Shown: one piece after another, positions 1 through 64,000 of the stretch
Layout: each line of letters starts with the position of its first letter
Numbering within the stretch: position 1 is the stretch's first letter
NCBI GenBank assembly: GCA_907165135.1
Contig: OU015567.1
Coordinates: 13,144,001 to 13,208,000, forward strand
Source: Oikopleura dioica
Lineage: Eukaryota; Animalia; Chordata
Reading direction: 5' to 3'
Length of the DNA stretch: 64,000 bases
Notes under the pieces: model-generated
Seen by the model: only the letters and a program-made list of their open reading frames with translations
What the model was told of the DNA's origin: nothing
The model's database searches: none
Program-made: the position numbers and the translations under genes

Positions 1-117
1 ATATTTATCGTCGCTGTGCTGGTCATCATATTTTACCTACTTTGCTGTTGCTACAAGAAAATCACGAACCATAGAAGGGAAAGATACTCAAGAGGAAATG
101 CCAGTGAAAATGTTTAG
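1..117 (+). CDS. 3' end of a membrane protein (TM helix plus short cytoplasmic tail), partial
   Basis: Frame 1 reads IFIVAVLVIIFYLLCCCYKKITNHRRERYSRGNASENV*: hydrophobic helix, Cys cluster, basic stop-transfer residues, TAG at 115-117. Confidence 0.6.
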   Translation: MFIVAVLVIIFYLLCCCYKKITNHRRERYSRGNASENV

Positions 118-798
118 ATAGAGCTCTTTTGCATCAATCATTAATTTCGGACCCAAATTTTCTGACAAATAAATTAAAATTTTTTCCGAGTTATTTTATT
201 CGAAATTATCTGAGACAAGAGTAGCTATCAGATGAACGCCGCTAATACAGTAGATGACTGTATGATAATGGTTGCCTGACCTTGAGACAGAGTGAGAGGG
301 TGCTCGGGCCAATAAGCGAGGGGCGAGGGTGGCTTTCCAATTCAGCGCTCTCCCGAGTCCGCCTCTTGTTTTCAACTCGAACTGCGCTGCTTTTCAGATT
401 CCGAGAACTGTTTCGCTACTGAAGCAAATTTGGCCGCAGAGATTTTTCTTCCGGAAGAATTTCCTTGCTCTACAAACTTGTGAAAAAACAGATGATTCTT
501 CGAACTTTTTATTCTTTATTTTTAATTAATTTCTGATTTTTTTACTAAAATATTTTAGAATTAAAATTGTCGTCTATAGCATATCAATTAATCCATGTAT
601 AAATAGAAAATTGATAAAATCTCAAAAATAGCAAGTTCAAGAGCCACTTCCGTCTCAAAACTGGGGCTAATCCCTGTATTTTTCAATTATCGAGATTTCT
701 CCAGTACGATCAAAGTCAATTTCAGACTGTGTGTATTGTTGCTGCGCAAGAAGCACTTACGAAAGAGGGTTGAGTTTTTTCCTGCACCGAGTAATTGT

Positions 799-2367: not shown

Positions 2368-5300
2368 ATGAAAGTTACAATCGCTTTCGGGTACACCAGG
2401 GTCGTTGTGCCAAGTCAATCGAGCCAGACTGTTCACGAACTTATGCAACAAGGTATGGAAATTCGATATATATTGGGACCTTTGACCTCAAATCTCAATT
2501 TTACGAGGTTTGAAGTATAAGGGTCCGTCAAATAAAGTGACCTAAAAAGATCGAATTTGATGTCTTTTATGAAAAATTATTGTTTTTAATTCTATTTTTA
2601 TAATTGTTCTTTTGAAGCTGCCTACCGCTATCTGAAATTGCTCAACAAAAACTGCCATGTATTCAAATTGGAAACTTCGGACGGCGCCCTGCTGTGCGGC
2701 GACGATTTGGTTCAAGACGTCGTTGACGACAAAGAAATCCTCGTCGCAGTCTACGACGAAGAAGAAGAAACACTAGAGGACACGACACCTGGGCTGATGT
2801 CCTCGCCTTATTGCCACCCGCGGCTGGCCGGAGAAGCTTCCCTCGGACTCAGTCCCATTCAGAATCCGAACCATCAAAGGTGAGAAAATGTCGGACGCGG
2901 AAGTCGCCGAGCTTTGAAGAGCAGATTTTTAACACCCCGAAAGGAGCTAATTTTACATCCGCGGGAGAAAGATGAGTGATTCATCATCCCTTCGAATAAT
3001 CCTTCTGATCTGCTCGTGACTCATCAACCGATCCCATGACCGGGTGAAAGGAGAATGACTGTGTTTTAGGCTTCAAGAGGAACCGGCTACTTCGAGTCCA
3101 CTGAACTCCATCGCGGAAATATCCACTTTCTCCCGCGGTGGAATGAATAGATCGAGACATTCCCTGAGAAGCAGCGAGTTTGACTATGAAAAGTTCCGCA
3201 GCGAAGGACACAATTTAGACGAGAACAAAGACGACGAGGGATTTTACTCGGACGCAACGATTTCAGTCTATTTTCAGGTTTGTAAATTGCGTCAAAGTTG
3301 ATAAGATGATTCAAATCAAGTGAATCTTTTCTTGATAGACAGTAAGTTTAATGAGTTTGATTCAGCATTCAACTATTTTGAAAATCAACCGAGATCCTCG
3401 TGATGAGATGAGAATCGAATTCAGCGATTGGAAAAGCTCAAGATCTGATGGAGCAGTTTTGGGACTCAAAGTTGCTTCAGTCAGAAATGCCAATAGAGAG
3501 CAGTTCTTTTTTCCTGGCGACGGAATTCTAGAAGGTCAGGGGTTGATTTTATTGTTACAGTCGGTTCGATCCTGTCAGTTATTGACCCAGTTACAGTAAA
3601 CAACATTTCGCTTGCCTCTGGATCGCTCAGGAATGGTTCACGAGGATTATTCTGTAGACTGCGAAATGCAGTATTTCACGAAACAGCGCCAATAATATTT
3701 TCTCTTAGGGGGTATTATTGACTCAATTTGTCTATGTCTACTCTGACGTGACGCAGCTTCATTTTTTAACTGCTCGTGAGCCAAGGTGTTAGTTCACGAA
3801 ACGAATTTGTTCAAAAAGCATTCAAAGAGCCTTCAATCGTACTCAGAGTGGTGACGCAAGACGTCATTCAAGAGATACAATCACTGGAATCGAGGTTAGT
3901 CCAGTTTAAACTTTCCAATCGCTCGTAAAAATAGCTTTATGTCTCATTTCCGCAGGCTTTTATTTTATTATTTACGCCTTTATTTTCTGAGTTATGACTC
4001 GATGAGTGAAAAGAGAAGCTTTGTAATGTAGCTTTTTATATAGAAACTTGCATTTTTCTTACTAGATCTTTTCAGTCTTATGTCCGATGATGCTCGCGAC
4101 GAGCAACATCTTGAGAATTCCTCAAATTTCGAGCTCAAAGCCGCTACAAATGTAATAAACGCGAATAGAAGAACAGGACGCTGGAAAAAGCTGGAGATAG
4201 AAGTCTTCAAAGGAAACAGCGGCCTGGGATTCACAATTACTTCCAGAGACACTGCTCTTTCAGGTACCTTTTCTTCATGAATTTGATGGATATTGTTTGT
4301 CCAGCGAACCGAGGAGTATCGCCGTTGATTGTGAATCGAATTCTACCCGACAGTGCAGCTCAATCCAGCGACTTACAGATAGGCGACAAGCTACTGAGCA
4401 TCAATGGCGACGATATTTCCTCACTGACTCAATCCCAAGTCGTGAAACTCTTAAAAGCATGTCCAAGCGGTGCTTTGGTTTCGCTAGGAATCTCCCGCCA
4501 AGTTCGAAAGGAGCGAAAATGCGCGCCAGAATCAGAAAACGAAGAAGATAAATTCACAGTTCACTCAAAAGTCTTGGAAATGTTCAAAGGCCCAACCGAA
4601 GTGTGCTCATTCAATATTCCGATGGTGAACACGAGTTTGGGCATTCAGCTGAAAGGAACTAATTCCGATAAACATTCCACGCTTTCTGGTTTATTCGTTG
4701 ACAAAATTTTAACGACAGGCGCTGCGTTCAAGGTTAGTACCGGTAGAAATCGGGCTGCGGGCTGAATACGATCACTAGAAATAAAATAGAAAGGAATTTT
4801 TTCATTTGATAGTTGCCTTTATGGTCGAAAATATTTTCTCTAATGAATTTTGAAATATTCGTTAGCAAGTTGTGTAGATCTGCTCCATTCAGTTGTACTC
4901 CTACAGGGTCCAAGTAAAGTCCATCCATGTTCTTGAATTTGTCGCTCCAGACCTTTACATCATCGAGAATCTCTTCAAAAATTAGTGATCAGAAAGAATT
5001 GATATCGAGTGGTACCGTTCATATTTCGTTGTTGAAAATCAGCGTCGACATATCCCAGGACTTGGGTTTGACCTGAAGTCGCAGAATCTACACAGGCCTG
5101 GATCGCTTCGATTTCTGTGTCGTCGATTTTTACTGGAGCATCTCGTGTCTGAGTTTCGATTTAATAAGCATTCGACTTTCTTGCCCTGATTTCTTACCTG
5201 AACCACGATATTCACATTGGGTCCCCCATGGCGTAAGCTGAGCCAGAATGAGTCTCTGCACTTTTTCTCCCCGGTATGATCCTAGAAAGTTTTCTTTACA

Positions 5301-7609
5301 CTGCCCTGTTTTCTTTACATTACCTCGTCGACAGACGGCCAGAAAAAGAGAGGAACATAGAGTTTCTGTTTCGGAGCACATTCTGGAGGAAGCGGAATTT
5401 CAGCCTCAACAGGGTCGGTTGTTATTCCTTCCAGCGCGTCGTTCATGCTGTCCATGATTGTTTGGATTAGTTCTTGGTTTGATGAGTGACCGACTCCATG
5501 TGGCTCTTGCGGGGATGATGTAGGGTAGGTCTTGAGAATATCATAACGGGTTGAATGAGGTTATTATACAGTACCTGAATTGATACTGGGTAATGATGAT
5601 CAGCGTCATTAGCGTTATGGACATCAACGAGTGGCACGGGCGCGACGTTGTCATTGATGTGAATACCATTCTGGGAGAAAGTTGGGACGAGTTCTATTTT
5701 GCCACTTGCACATTCTTCTCGTGTATCTTGAAAGTGCCGAAGCGATTTATCTTTCGCGATGCATCTGTTTTTGTACTCCTCGATCTCGCACTGCACACCC
5801 CCTTTATTTCATTGAAATTAACTTATTTTTCTGAGTAGACTTACCATCGAAACAACAAGCACAGTTATTTCCTAGTTCAGGTTTCCATTCACACACGCAA
5901 GATGATTTCTTTTTCGTCCAAATTTTAAAAGGAGCCAGTTCAGAATTATCTGCTGTGCAGATATTTTTATCGAGGCAGTCATAGCATCGATGTTTGTTGT
6001 GAATTCCGCATTGACACGCTCCCTATGATTTTCCATTTTCAATCATATGAAACTCGACTTACATTGACGCATTCTGCACAATCGGTCCTTGTCTTATCGA
6101 AATCACAGATTCCATCGGAGTATTTCTTCACAAAAATCTCCAAGGCTTCTCATCATCATCGTCGTGCATACCCACCATGTGTCTTGATGGAGAAAACGAG
6201 CTATCAATCTTTCCGATCTTTAAAAATATCGAAAATATTGTCAATTTTTTCATTTTTCGTGCTTCTCTCACTTTGTTCTTAGGCTAAGGCCAGTTTCTAC
6301 AAGTACCTTTTCTGGACTACATGAATAATAAAGCGAGCTACCGGACATTAGAAGCTGATTAAACATTTGCAATGCCCCTTGTAGTACTCGGCAAAGATCA
6401 CTGTTATTAATTTTCAGTGAAATAACACGTTAGAAGGGAAATTGCTCGTGACGCATTATTTTAGGACGGGCGGATCAAGGAAAACGACAAGATTCTCGCC
6501 ATTAATAATCATTCCCTGCACGGATATGGTGAGTTCATCTTTTTCTTTATCTCTTCAAATTGATTTCTTTAGACAATGAAACAGCACTAGAAGTCATCCG
6601 CCAAAACCTCGCGAGTTATAGTCGCTCCGAAGTTCTCATAAAAGTCGAAAGACCAAAAACATCTGTAAAGAAATCACTCTCATACCCAAACTCGTTCGTC
6701 ATTTCAAAGGTATCTCTCCTCCAGAATACGATTTTTACAACTTTCTCAGCCTCATTCACCCCGGAAAACCGACTCACTTCCTCGACAGTTCAACGATTCG
6801 TACATTATGGCAACTCAGCACGGCATCCGTACATTCTCACTCGACTCCAATTCCGCAAAATCCGGTATCAATAGATCGCAAAGCCTGCACGAGTGCAACT
6901 CCGCTCAAAACAAAATCATCAATAAATGCGATTCAATGAGTTATATAGGTACTGCTTGTCAATACGTATACTTGAACACAAAGCTTGATTTCGATCTTGA
7001 TTTGAATATTCTTTGGAATATTCGATTAAAACAATTTTCAGAGTGCTCGATCGACTCTGAAGAGTCCGACTATCTCGCCTTCGAGCGTGAGAGCTCAATG
7101 CGCAAAAGTTTCCACGAAAATCGCAAGCAATCGAACTCGCCCCCGGCCAAATTCTTCAACATGTATGACGCGTATCGAAAAAAGAAAAACGGTAAATTTA
7201 TCGACATTGTGATCTAATCCTTTCAATTTTATGCAATACTCTTCTCCTAACATTGTAAAATATATTGTTATAACTTCTGTATTGTGAGCTGTTCTTGATT
7301 TCGGAAAAATGGGGTTCAGGAGCGATCGCGCGGATAGTTCGCGGGCTAATCTACAGCGCGGGCAAAAAGGGGCGACCCGCGCGGGCTATGGCGAGAAAGC
7401 GCTCCGCTTCTCAACCAGACGTGTCTCAGGATTTCACCTGGGAGCCACACAGTAAGCTCACACTTACTCCCGTAAAAGTCACAAATCACGGACTGCGGCA
7501 CCCATCACTACTTGCTCAATATTTGAGCGCTTCATCCTTTTTTCGTTCTAATGTTTTCATTGATAATTTTCTTATAGAGCACTATGATTACACTCCAAAG
7601 GTATTCTAG
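2368..7609 (+). CDS. PARD3: Partitioning defective 3 (Par-3/Bazooka), multi-exon
   Basis: N-terminal MKVTIAFGYTRVVVP...LETSDGALLCGDDLVQDVVDDKEILVAVYDE (CR1); PDZ domains (KGNSGLGFTITSRD..., SLGIQLKGTNSD...GAAFK|DGRIKENDKILAINN); aPKC-binding CR3-like LAFERESSMRKSFHE near 7075-7125. 3' end approximate. Confidence 0.92.
4734..6366 (-). CDS. Nested antisense gene in par-3 intron: Cys-rich N-terminus plus spherulin-4/GH135-like domain
   Basis: Minus-strand exons joined by short GT-AG introns give ...LYVPLFFWPS...NVNIVVQ...TQVLGYVDADFQQRNMNEILDDVKVWSDKFKNMDGLYLDP..., resembling spherulin-4 (VPLYVYP; VLGYV...R...DI; DGIFxD). One apparent 1-nt frameshift at 6132-6136; start codon tentative. Confidence 0.7.
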
Positions 7610-13888: not shown

Positions 13889-15632
13889 ATGCTATCTTAT
13901 ATAGCTGCCACAGTATTTTCGCTTTTCTTATGTCGATTTTTGCAAATATGGCTCAAGTACAAATTCCATCCGATTCCAAGTCATCCTTACCCGCTTCGAA
14001 AAGATTTGAACGCAGAGGTCATCGGGAGAGCTGTTAAAAATGGAACACTCCCCAAAATTTTTCGACCAAAGATGTTTCCGTTCTCTTCCTACAGCAATGG
14101 TTACATTCTCACTGATTTCAAGATGATCAAAGAAGCTTTTTCGCAAAAAGAACTTTCGAACAGAGAGGGGTCAGAAAAACAGAGCCAAGAGATAGCCAGC
14201 GACAGGGCATTCATCGGACTTGATAAAAAGGCGCATGAAATTCTTGGTCCAGATGACCAACTTATAAAAAACGGCCCTGGAAATTTCATCGGCATCGGAG
14301 ATGGCCCATATGATGCTGTGCACAAATCATTCAGACAAATGTGGTTTGATACCTCAAAACGACTCACCGGAAAGAACCGAATGATCGAAATCATGCAGCA
14401 AAGTTCCAGCTCTGTGAACGAGATTTTACTCCGGGAAGGGAGCAAAGAAAGTGGCATGGATCCAAAAAGAGTATTTATGAACGGAACAATGAATGTCATC
14501 ACCGGCTTTGCTTTTGGAAACACCATGGAATTCGACGATCCAGGTACTGATAATTTCAAATATTTTCATACTTCATAAATGGTTTTTTAGTCTTCAAAGA
14601 AATCGCCAACGCTGTGACTACAATATTTAAATTTTTCAGCGTTTCAATTTTGAAAAGAACCATTGCCGGAAAAGTCCCATCTTGGGTCACTAGAAATTTT
14701 GTTTATCAGAGAATTTGGCACAGTTTTCTCAAAGAAAGAAACGAAGTCGTTCTAAAGTTTCACGAGTTTCTTCACAAACAAATCGTTAACCATCGGATCG
14801 ACTTGGACAAAAACAACCCTCGGGACTATCTTGGTAATAGCGAACTGTTTTTTCTTTCCTTTATTTCAAGATATGCTTCTTATTGCTGCTGAGAAAGAAA
14901 AACGACTTGGGTATGATGTCGTGGTCGCTACAGTTCTTGGAATATATCTTGGAGCGAGCGATACTCTTGCGTAAGATAAACTAAAAAGTAGAGAAAAAAG
15001 AACAATTTTATAGAAACCAACTCTCGTGGTTCTGCGTCACTCTTGCTGATCACCCAGAAGTACAAGAAAAGATGTACGAGGAAATAATCGCTTCTCTTGA
15101 TAATGAGAATGAAATCAAGAAGGAGAACTGCCCCTTTACGAGATCAGTTTTGCTTGAATGCCAAAGATGGAATCCCGTCGTCGATAGTTTGCTCCACCGA
15201 GCGTCGGAAGACATTGTTGTCGACGGAGTTTTTATTGAAAAAGGCTCCACTCTTCAAGGTTTGAAAAGGATTTTCTCGCAAATCGTGATTTCTAGCATCT
15301 CTGACGGCTGTAATGCACAACCCAGCAAACTTTCCGGAGCCAGAAAAGTTCATCCCTGATCGATTTTACAAAAACGGAGAGTTCGTTAATGACGTTAAAG
15401 TAGTCAGCTTCTCCATCGGCCTTCGGAACTGCATTGGCAAACAGATTGCAATCGATGAGTATTTCATTTTCACGACGAATATCATTCGCGACTTCCGCTT
15501 ATCTAGGTATGTACAGAGATCGTTGTGCATAATTTACTTGTTTTTAGAAAATCGAAATCTATGAAGATCGCGAACCATCGATTTTTACGAATCCCCGAAG
15601 AAGGCCACGTTCGATTCGAAAAACGCAATTAA
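13889..15632 (+). CDS. Cytochrome P450 (clan 2-like), multi-exon
   Basis: N-terminal anchor; I-helix GIYLGASDT; K-helix ECQR; PEKFIPDRF; heme motif FSIGLRNCIG; stop at 15630-15632. Confidence 0.93.
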
Positions 15633-63455: not shown

Positions 63456-64000
63456 TATGTTGTGTTATTTCTCTTTTTTGTTGTTGTTGAAAAGCTTCTT
63501 CTTTTCGTTAATCTCTTTCTCTTCGTTGATTTCAAAAAATCAAATAAAAAAAATCGACTGTTGTGTTATTTACAAGTGGCTCTGTCTATTACAAGAGTAC
63601 CATGTATCAGAAGATAGGACTTCAATCGACCAAAAACTCCAGCGCCCACTCCTCGATCGTGAAAACGCAAGCGCGCGCCGCCTCACCGTCGCCACCTATC
63701 GCAAACTTACGAACCCAGCGCCATGGAGCAGCGAAATCCGCTACTCCTTCGCCGCGAATCGTCAATCGGGCAGGAGTTAACGGTCAAAATTCAATGTCAA
63801 TAATAAGCTAATAGTCAGTAACTTCGAACTTTACCCGAATATTTTCCTGAAGCTAGCGTTTTTTTTAATTACTGATGAAATGCTATCATACTGTATGTTT
63901 TCTGATACCAAGTTCATTGTAGACTACAATTTGTAGTCCCTTAGTCTGATTTTTTTCTATCGATTTATCAAAGAAAGGGTCTAATTTTGTGCTTGGTTCC

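Follow-up and report, generated by a model that had tools for sequence, protein, structure and literature searches.

In the present work we describe a stretch of 64,000 nucleotides (nt) of Oikopleura dioica DNA (assembly GCA_907165135.1, contig OU015567.1, positions 13,144,001 to 13,208,000, forward strand; hereafter the window), in which an intron of par-3, a polarity gene, harbours a minus-strand gene with a divergent Spherulin-4/GH135-like domain. The plus-strand host was assigned to Par-3 by two exons matching PF12053 (E 7.5e-6 and 3.6e-11) and by the exon ending at position 4732, which matches the PDZ family PF00595 (E 1.4e-14). The joint from 4732 to 6465 (GT..AG, 1,732 nt skipped) was observed in 49 + 24 + 37 = 110 spliced reads of the RNA runs X4/X5/X6. 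According to these reads the host intron is real, and the coding sequence of the nested gene (6253 to 4734, opposite strand) is located wholly inside it. The host features are as follows.

4277 to 4732, plus strand: Par-3 exon encoding PDZ2 and the N-terminal half of PDZ3; match to PF00595; 3' end given by spliced reads, with the start at 4277 being that of the open reading frame (ORF) and not a mapped splice site
4733 to 6464, plus strand: Par-3 intron of 1,732 nt, GT..AG, which splits PDZ3 and contains the entire nested coding sequence; 110 spliced reads
4690 to 4695, minus strand: AATAAA, candidate poly(A) signal read from the sequence, approximately 40 nt past the stop codon of the nested gene and antisense within the par-3 coding exon

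Read on the plus strand, the TAA stop codon of the nested gene (4736-4734, minus strand) falls on bases +2 to +4 of the par-3 donor GTTAGT (4733-4738, plus strand). The nested stop thus overlaps the 5' splice site of par-3, with a single hexamer being used by both genes. The orthologous metagenome contigs L002 and L003 (see below) show this layout as well. The candidate AATAAA is the complement of the Leu-Phe codons of the par-3 peptide GLFVDK; if it is used, the 3' untranslated region of the nested gene would overlap host coding sequence.

Gene model of the nested gene

Exons were called by three-frame translation of the minus strand and joining at GT-AG sites. Eight certain exons and one putative first exon form one continuous frame once spliced. 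The introns between exons 2 and 9 measure, in order, 40, 43, 44, 42, 49, 43, and 42 nt, the last of which is of the GC-AG type in the window and of the GT-AG type in its relatives L002 and L003.

6176 to 6253, minus strand: putative exon 1; ATG at 6253, 26 codons (MKKLTIFSIFLKIG..., MKKLTIFSIFL...), possible signal peptide
6063 to 6137, minus strand: exon 2 (acceptor at 6137 or 6125); Cys module 1 begins; open frame, GTAAGT donor at 6062
5845 to 6022, minus strand: exon 3; remainder of Cys module 1, Cys module 2 begins; 40-nt GT-AG intron upstream, phase-1 donor
5575 to 5801, minus strand: exon 4; end of Cys module 2 and a His/Asn/Asp-rich linker
5324 to 5530, minus strand: exon 5; linker, and from approximately 5395 the spherulin-4-like domain (strand beta1, KLYVPLFFWP)
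5198 to 5281, minus strand: exon 6; helix 1 and strand beta2 (NVNIVVQ), with the family motif NPxNGPG lost
5016 to 5148, minus strand: exon 7; strand beta3 with VLGYVDADFQQR (family motif GYVxTxYxxR)
4817 to 4972, minus strand: exon 8; strand beta4, DGLYLDP where the family has DGIFFDE, followed by helix 4
4734 to 4774, minus strand: exon 9; strand beta5 (VIVFSPQ for family vvlNPG), PDFYRY, stop TAA 4736-4734

With the putative exon 1 included, the spliced product comprises 388-392 amino acids and 19 Cys residues; two 8-Cys modules are followed by a linker and, at the C-terminus, by a domain of approximately 155 residues. The Cys strings DCAECVNGACQCG..HRC and NCACCFDGGVQCE..NRC are formed only across splice junctions, and their presence only after splicing is evidence for the gene model. 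Single-exon searches did not yield a Pfam or ESM Atlas family for the two 8-Cys modules.

Exon 1 joins exon 2 in phase from a GT donor at 6175 to AG acceptors ending at 6138 or 6126, corresponding to an intron of 38 or 50 nt. The frame of exon 2 runs into stop codons shortly upstream and contains no ATG, and the putative exon 1 is the only in-phase start found. Its hydropathy maximum over 8 residues is 2.59. Both exon 1 and the signal peptide seen in it are inferred only from these properties of the sequence.

A preliminary description of this DNA had proposed that about eight minus-strand exons fill the PDZ3-splitting intron of par-3 and encode two Cys modules, a linker, and a spherulin-4-like domain. 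Host, intron, and architecture, including the motif DGLYLDP, were recovered here, and frame, splice sites, and orthologous contigs agree on the exons.

Conservation of the gene and of its nested position

A search with exon 8 (phmmer, 1.84 billion protein representatives, E up to 1e-3) returned two orthologous fragments. L002, a contig of a JGI metagenome, is 88% identical and carries a PDZ gene directly downstream on the other strand; L001, a Tara Oceans contig, is approximately 60% identical, and an antisense PDZ exon follows likewise. Two further relatives, L003 from a metagenome scan with an exon 8 alignment and L143 from a further protein search, belong to the lineage of L002. The position beside the same par-3 exon is thus kept in divergent metagenome relatives with saturated synonymous sites.

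In the comparison of the window with L003 over exons 5-9, all exons are of equal length, and the protein is 88% and the DNA 79% identical. The proportions of nonsynonymous and synonymous differences (Nei-Gojobori) amount to pN 0.063 and pS 0.748, the latter being saturated, and the introns are only 56-69% alike. A pN far below a saturated pS together with equal exon lengths indicates strong purifying selection on the protein. Likewise, the orthologous contigs L002, L003, and L143, which keep the exon lengths and a protein identity above the DNA identity, argue against a chance string of ORFs.

The C-terminus ..SPQPDFYR[YF] followed by a stop codon is common to the window, L002/L003, and the 60%-identical L001. 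L001 lacks the last intron and is open up to this shared C-terminus (..IIVFSPQPDFYRF before the stop codon), which confirms the GC-AG intron of the window and indicates that this C-terminus is old. The N-terminal part is less conserved than the domain, with exon 4 being 59% identical in L143 and L003. In L143 (positions 43-120) exon 4 begins with ..ITSQFEDFKERC compared to GVQCEIEEYKNRC in the window, so that one module 2 Cys of the window has no counterpart. Judged from these sequences, the N-terminal architecture may differ between lineages.

Two observations concern the surroundings of the gene. In L001 (positions 54-126, minus strand) a tRNA-Thr(AGT) gene precedes the exon 8 acceptor by approximately 60 nt, within the expected intron between exons 7 and 8 and on the opposite strand; no such tRNA gene is present in the window or in L002/L003. 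Elsewhere in the window (13889-14578, plus strand), the relatives of a 229-residue ORF without a Pfam domain are confined to marine metagenome and Logan contigs (96, 70, 56, and lower % identity), and this ORF seems to be another lineage-restricted gene.

Assignment of the C-terminal domain to Spherulin-4/GH135

Family members were fetched by a DNA pattern for DGIFFDE, which gave 120 prokaryotic loci; 23 ORFs from these loci also carry NPxNGPG, GYVxTxY, or NPG motifs. All of the 10 motif-fetched bacterial ORFs that were tested belong to PF12138 (108-169 bits), and the same bacterial members match the structures 5c5g and 5d6t of Sph3, the GH135 enzyme of Aspergillus, at 60 bits. A hidden Markov model (HMM) of the 23 members matched the spliced protein with 38.3 bits over residues 205-329, and one of 143 members with 38.5 bits, compared to 6.0 bits for the best of 2,000 shuffled sequences. 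Alignment of a three-lineage appendicularian profile with the family (hhalign) resulted in a probability of 97% and an E value of 8e-11 over family columns 29-173 of 260. In a six-frame scan of the 64-kb window with the family HMM, exons 7, 8, 5, and 6 matched collinearly, with exon 7 as the top single-exon match (8.7 bits, profile positions 76-103). The strand motifs correspond as follows.

beta1: nested LYVPLFFWP, family iaVPsYfyP
beta2: nested NVNIVVQ, family glAIiNP
beta3: nested VLGYVDADFQQR, family VlGYVhTsYgaR
beta4: nested DGLYLDP, family DGIFFDE
beta5: nested VIVFSP, family vVlNP

Homology of the C-terminal domain to Spherulin-4/GH135, in a very divergent form, is therefore supported at the level of sequence profiles. 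Individual sequences are distant: in phmmer, the nested domain is matched best by L073 (Legionella wadsworthii, 28.3 bits) and P0099 (27.1 bits). In the ESM Atlas, the three nearest clusters of exon 8 are all PF12138, with scores of 0.78-0.80, which is taken as a lead only; exons 7 and 3 gave uninformative results there. The scan of the window returned one further match at 63889-63999 (minus strand), an open stretch of 37 residues with 7.2 bits (E 0.51) at family HMM positions 67-93, which is taken as chance due to its isolation without collinear neighbours. A bacterial Cna-B repeat adhesin (P0003), the third phmmer match of exon 8, was also judged to be a chance match.

The resemblance to spherulin-4 could itself be fortuitous and the domain a lineage-specific novelty. 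This would agree with the outcome of several searches that weigh against the assignment: the PF12138 model of Pfam, run on seven single exons (E up to 10), matched none of them; the phmmer search of exon 8 against the 1.84 billion representatives contained no spherulin-4 protein; a PDB profile search with exon 8 did not find Sph3; and the Atlas scores stay below 0.9. As the model of Pfam matched no single exon, the family call rests on the profiles built here from Pfam-verified members. These profiles, with 38.5 bits where no shuffled sequence exceeds 6.0, the hhalign match over five consecutive strand motifs in correct order, and the collinearity of four exons on the profile make a chance resemblance very improbable. 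Of the HMMER check suggested in the preliminary description, the part using Pfam's own model on single exons remained blank, whereas the spliced protein was matched by the profiles of verified members, and the proposed homology stands on the latter.

Truncation of the barrel and loss of catalytic residues

The nested domain consists of strands beta1-beta5 only, and the protein ends six residues after SPQ. Approximately 85 family columns (beta6-beta8) are without counterpart, and a complete (beta/alpha)8 barrel of approximately 239 profile positions is not encoded. For the last third of the family profile no credible match was found anywhere in the 64 kb by the six-frame HMM scan. The stop codon is situated at the same place in three lineages. 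A continuation of the gene past 4734 via a GT at 4740 was considered and rejected, because the stop is kept in L001 despite a different downstream sequence and because the window contains no C-terminal family signal.

As reference for the loss of residues, the 30 invariant columns of an alignment of bacterial members (A2) were used. Eleven of these are kept (P35, P40, G84, G89, Y90, V91, R98, D117, G118, D122, and P154), several are conservatively changed, N60, P61, G64, T93, E123, N153, and G155 are replaced, and D167, E173, Y191, T226, and P233 would lie past the nested stop. In detail, E123 is changed to Pro and N153/G155 to Ser/Gln; VQTRDAPV occupies the site of the family motif NPxNGPG, and SPQ that of NPG. 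The fourth strand reads DGLYLDP in the window and NGIYLDP in L001, with Pro in place of the Glu of the DE pair in all three lineages.

For Sph3, the Asp-Glu pair was reportedly numbered Asp166/Glu167 by Bamford et al. in 2015. In 5c5g, the counterpart of the A2 column E173 is chain residue 172, and thus Glu222 if the construct offset is considered. Glu222 is the acid/base of Sph3, and the catalytic pair is named Asp196/Glu222 (PMC12054363). With DP in place of DE, SPQ in place of NPG, and the catalytic Glu of beta6 beyond the stop codon, the residues predict that the nested protein is no GH135 glycosidase and cannot be catalytic as a GH135 hydrolase.

An active GH135 endo-alpha-1,4-N-acetylgalactosaminidase could be advocated on the basis of the homology to this family and of the Asp of the DE pair, which is retained in the window and L003. 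Given the Pro at the position of its Glu in three lineages, the NG that replaces the preceding DG in L001, the Ser at the position of the NPG Asn, and strands beta6-beta8 that are not encoded together with their Glu (A2 E173, Sph3 Glu222), an active enzyme would be hardly conceivable. According to its predicted sequence, the domain is a truncated, catalytically dead form of a known family in an unexpected host. The preliminary description had already suspected both a C-terminally short barrel and a loss of catalysis; the alignment that ends after beta5, the conserved stop, and the substituted or missing residues bear this out.

Expression and evidence for a functional gene

In the bulk RNA runs the par-3 exons are covered at a depth of 5-20x. 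These runs are mostly less than 90-95% alike to the window despite the same species label, and hence derive from a different lineage. Between positions 2800 and 7600 of the window, RNA reads match the par-3 exons at approximately 85-95%, with many fixed differences. The low identity of the RNA runs and the saturated synonymous sites compared to L003 indicate that the species label spans deeply divergent lineages.

Several observations weigh against a functional, secreted protein of the proposed architecture. The depth over the nested exons is 0.2-0.7x in X4 and X5 and zero in X6, all three runs being unstranded and from the divergent lineage, and no splice joints of the nested gene are among those listed for these runs. 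The putative exon 1 with its signal peptide is supported neither by reads nor by orthologues. Cys module 2 is not fully conserved, as the Cys of VQCE is missing in L143. Furthermore, there is no established way for a TIM-barrel fragment of five strands to fold alone. Set against the conserved frame, exon lengths, C-terminus, and nested position, these points nevertheless leave it likely, in our judgement, that this lineage-restricted locus, which lies antisense in the Par-3 intron dividing PDZ3, is a functional protein-coding gene of a compact genome of the appendicularian type.

Origin of the nested gene

The preliminary description had suggested horizontal transfer, with a phylogeny as the means to examine it. 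In a tree with 23 prokaryotic members of the family, the appendicularian pair is located outside all of them on a branch of 4.56+0.93 substitutions per site. Such a long branch outside every sampled prokaryote is uninformative and indicates no donor; nesting in a donor clade was not observed among the 23 members. Horizontal transfer is not shown by these data.

Integration into the host genome is evident from the position in a spliced Par-3 intron, introns of 40-49 nt as they are typical of the host, the local GC content, and the same synteny in independent contigs. Host-like introns and composition indicate integration, and great age in case of a transfer, and have no bearing on the origin as such.

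The acquisition of a microbial GH135 gene (bacterial, fungal, or viral) by the appendicularian lineage, with later intronisation, fusion to Cys modules, and truncation, is considered possible, with chances somewhat short of even. It is in agreement with the prokaryotic or viral nature of all retrieved family members, which comprise 23 genome loci, 120 metagenome proteins, and 19 IMG/VR contigs, and with the literature, in which GH135 is described as fungal and bacterial (PMC12054363). In case of exon 8, the phmmer relatives (E up to 1e-3) are restricted to three marine-metagenome contigs from the same kind of organism. The published list of O. dioica glycoside hydrolases contains GH6, GH9, and GH16, and no GH135. 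In addition, tunicates offer the accepted precedents CesA and GH6 (PMC7464555). The missing donor clade in the comparison with prokaryotic members and the length of the branch argue against a transfer, as do the top single-sequence score of only 28 bits and the nine exons with spliceosomal introns and local base composition. Moreover, a secreted protein of the nematode Heligmosomoides polygyrus carries the annotation Spherulation-specific family 4 (PMC10531923), and animals are thus not devoid of the family.

Full-length relatives of PF12138 are also encoded by 19 viral contigs of IMG/VR (L124-L142), which are 28-44% identical to a member from the Chloroflexota. None of the 19 resembles the nested domain more closely than bacterial members do. 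A profile search of 5.8 billion proteins gave only close bacterial relatives among the matches listed, and single-exon queries returned three to four metagenome contigs of the appendicularian type and nothing else.

Alternatively, the gene would be the vertically inherited remnant of an ancestral eukaryotic spherulin-4 gene that evolved very fast and was lost in most animals. The occurrence of the family in several eukaryotic groups, including at least one nematode by annotation, the extremely long branch that joins no prokaryotic clade, and the fully eukaryotic gene structure with its fused Cys modules are consistent with such a descent. As it demands many independent losses across the Metazoa, and no other chordate or tunicate relative was seen with the short single-exon queries, we regard vertical descent as rather unlikely.

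Proposed role of the encoded protein

The protein may be secreted, as suggested by its hydrophobic N-terminal exon, by the even number of Cys residues in its modules, and by descent from an extracellular family. It would act as a non-enzymatic module, most likely as a glycan- or matrix-binding or structural component, in which a relic hydrolase barrel is displayed by disulfide-rich modules. The five-stranded fragment would probably have to pair with a second copy or with a partner to close or cap the sheet. The gene would go back either to an old horizontal acquisition or to an older eukaryotic gene of which it is a relic. It is tempting to combine these steps into a captured microbial or viral GH135 that was cut to a five-stranded non-catalytic fragment, joined to Cys modules, and selected as a secreted glycan-binding or structural protein with a putative role in the house or gut, but taken as a whole this scenario is doubtful. 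In the supplements of the house-proteome paper, no peptide strings of the nested protein were found, and no literature linking Oikopleura and spherulin was found either.

The feeding house of appendicularians is composed of cellulose, made by a horizontally acquired synthase, and of proteins of unknown origin that are specific to the lineage. If a polysaccharide hydrolase of the microbial type gave rise to a conserved protein here, it would supply this story with a second kind of carbohydrate module, borrowed or relic. If a GH135 was indeed captured, the gene would represent a natural, selected "partial TIM barrel" as well as a further horizontally acquired matrix gene of tunicates. A barrel cut after beta5 under strong purifying selection provides a natural test case for the folding and pairing of barrel fragments. 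Furthermore, the gene is missing from protein collections (searched with exons 4 and 8) and from the list of O. dioica glycoside hydrolases, and nested antisense genes of compact genomes may thus be under-annotated.

Comparison with known systems

Strands beta1-beta5 of the nested domain are homologous to those of Sph3 from Aspergillus (GH135, 5c5g, 5d6t): VPLFFWP, GYVxxxFxxR, DGxYxD, and vIVFSP align with vPxYxyP, GYVxTxYxxR, DGIFFDE, and vvlNPG, respectively, and both belong to an extracellular family. In contrast to Sph3, the nested domain lacks approximately 85 of 260 columns, has DP instead of DE and SPQ instead of NPG, has lost NPxNGPG, and contains no acid/base Glu. It is also fused to two 8-Cys modules and a linker, and is encoded by an intron-rich gene in a genome of the chordate type. 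The bacterial, archaeal, and viral members of spherulation-specific family 4, e.g., those of the Chloroflexota (L087), L. wadsworthii, and the IMG/VR contigs, share the Pfam family of the nested domain. Whereas they are full-length barrels with all invariant residues, the nested domain is situated outside their radiation on a very long branch.

As in case of tunicate CesA and GH6, a microbial-type carbohydrate-enzyme family is found intronised and integrated in a tunicate-like genome. The phylogenies of CesA and GH6 reportedly point to bacterial donors, and both genes are shared across tunicates (PMC7464555). Unlike for CesA and GH6, no donor was found for the nested gene, no ascidian counterpart was seen, and the domain appears to be catalytically dead.

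In common with nested antisense genes of other compact animal genomes, one intron contains the whole coding sequence, the host gene runs on the other strand, and its splicing skips the nested gene. A difference is that the stop codon of the nested gene overlaps the 5' splice site of par-3 and its likely poly(A) signal is located antisense in a host coding exon.

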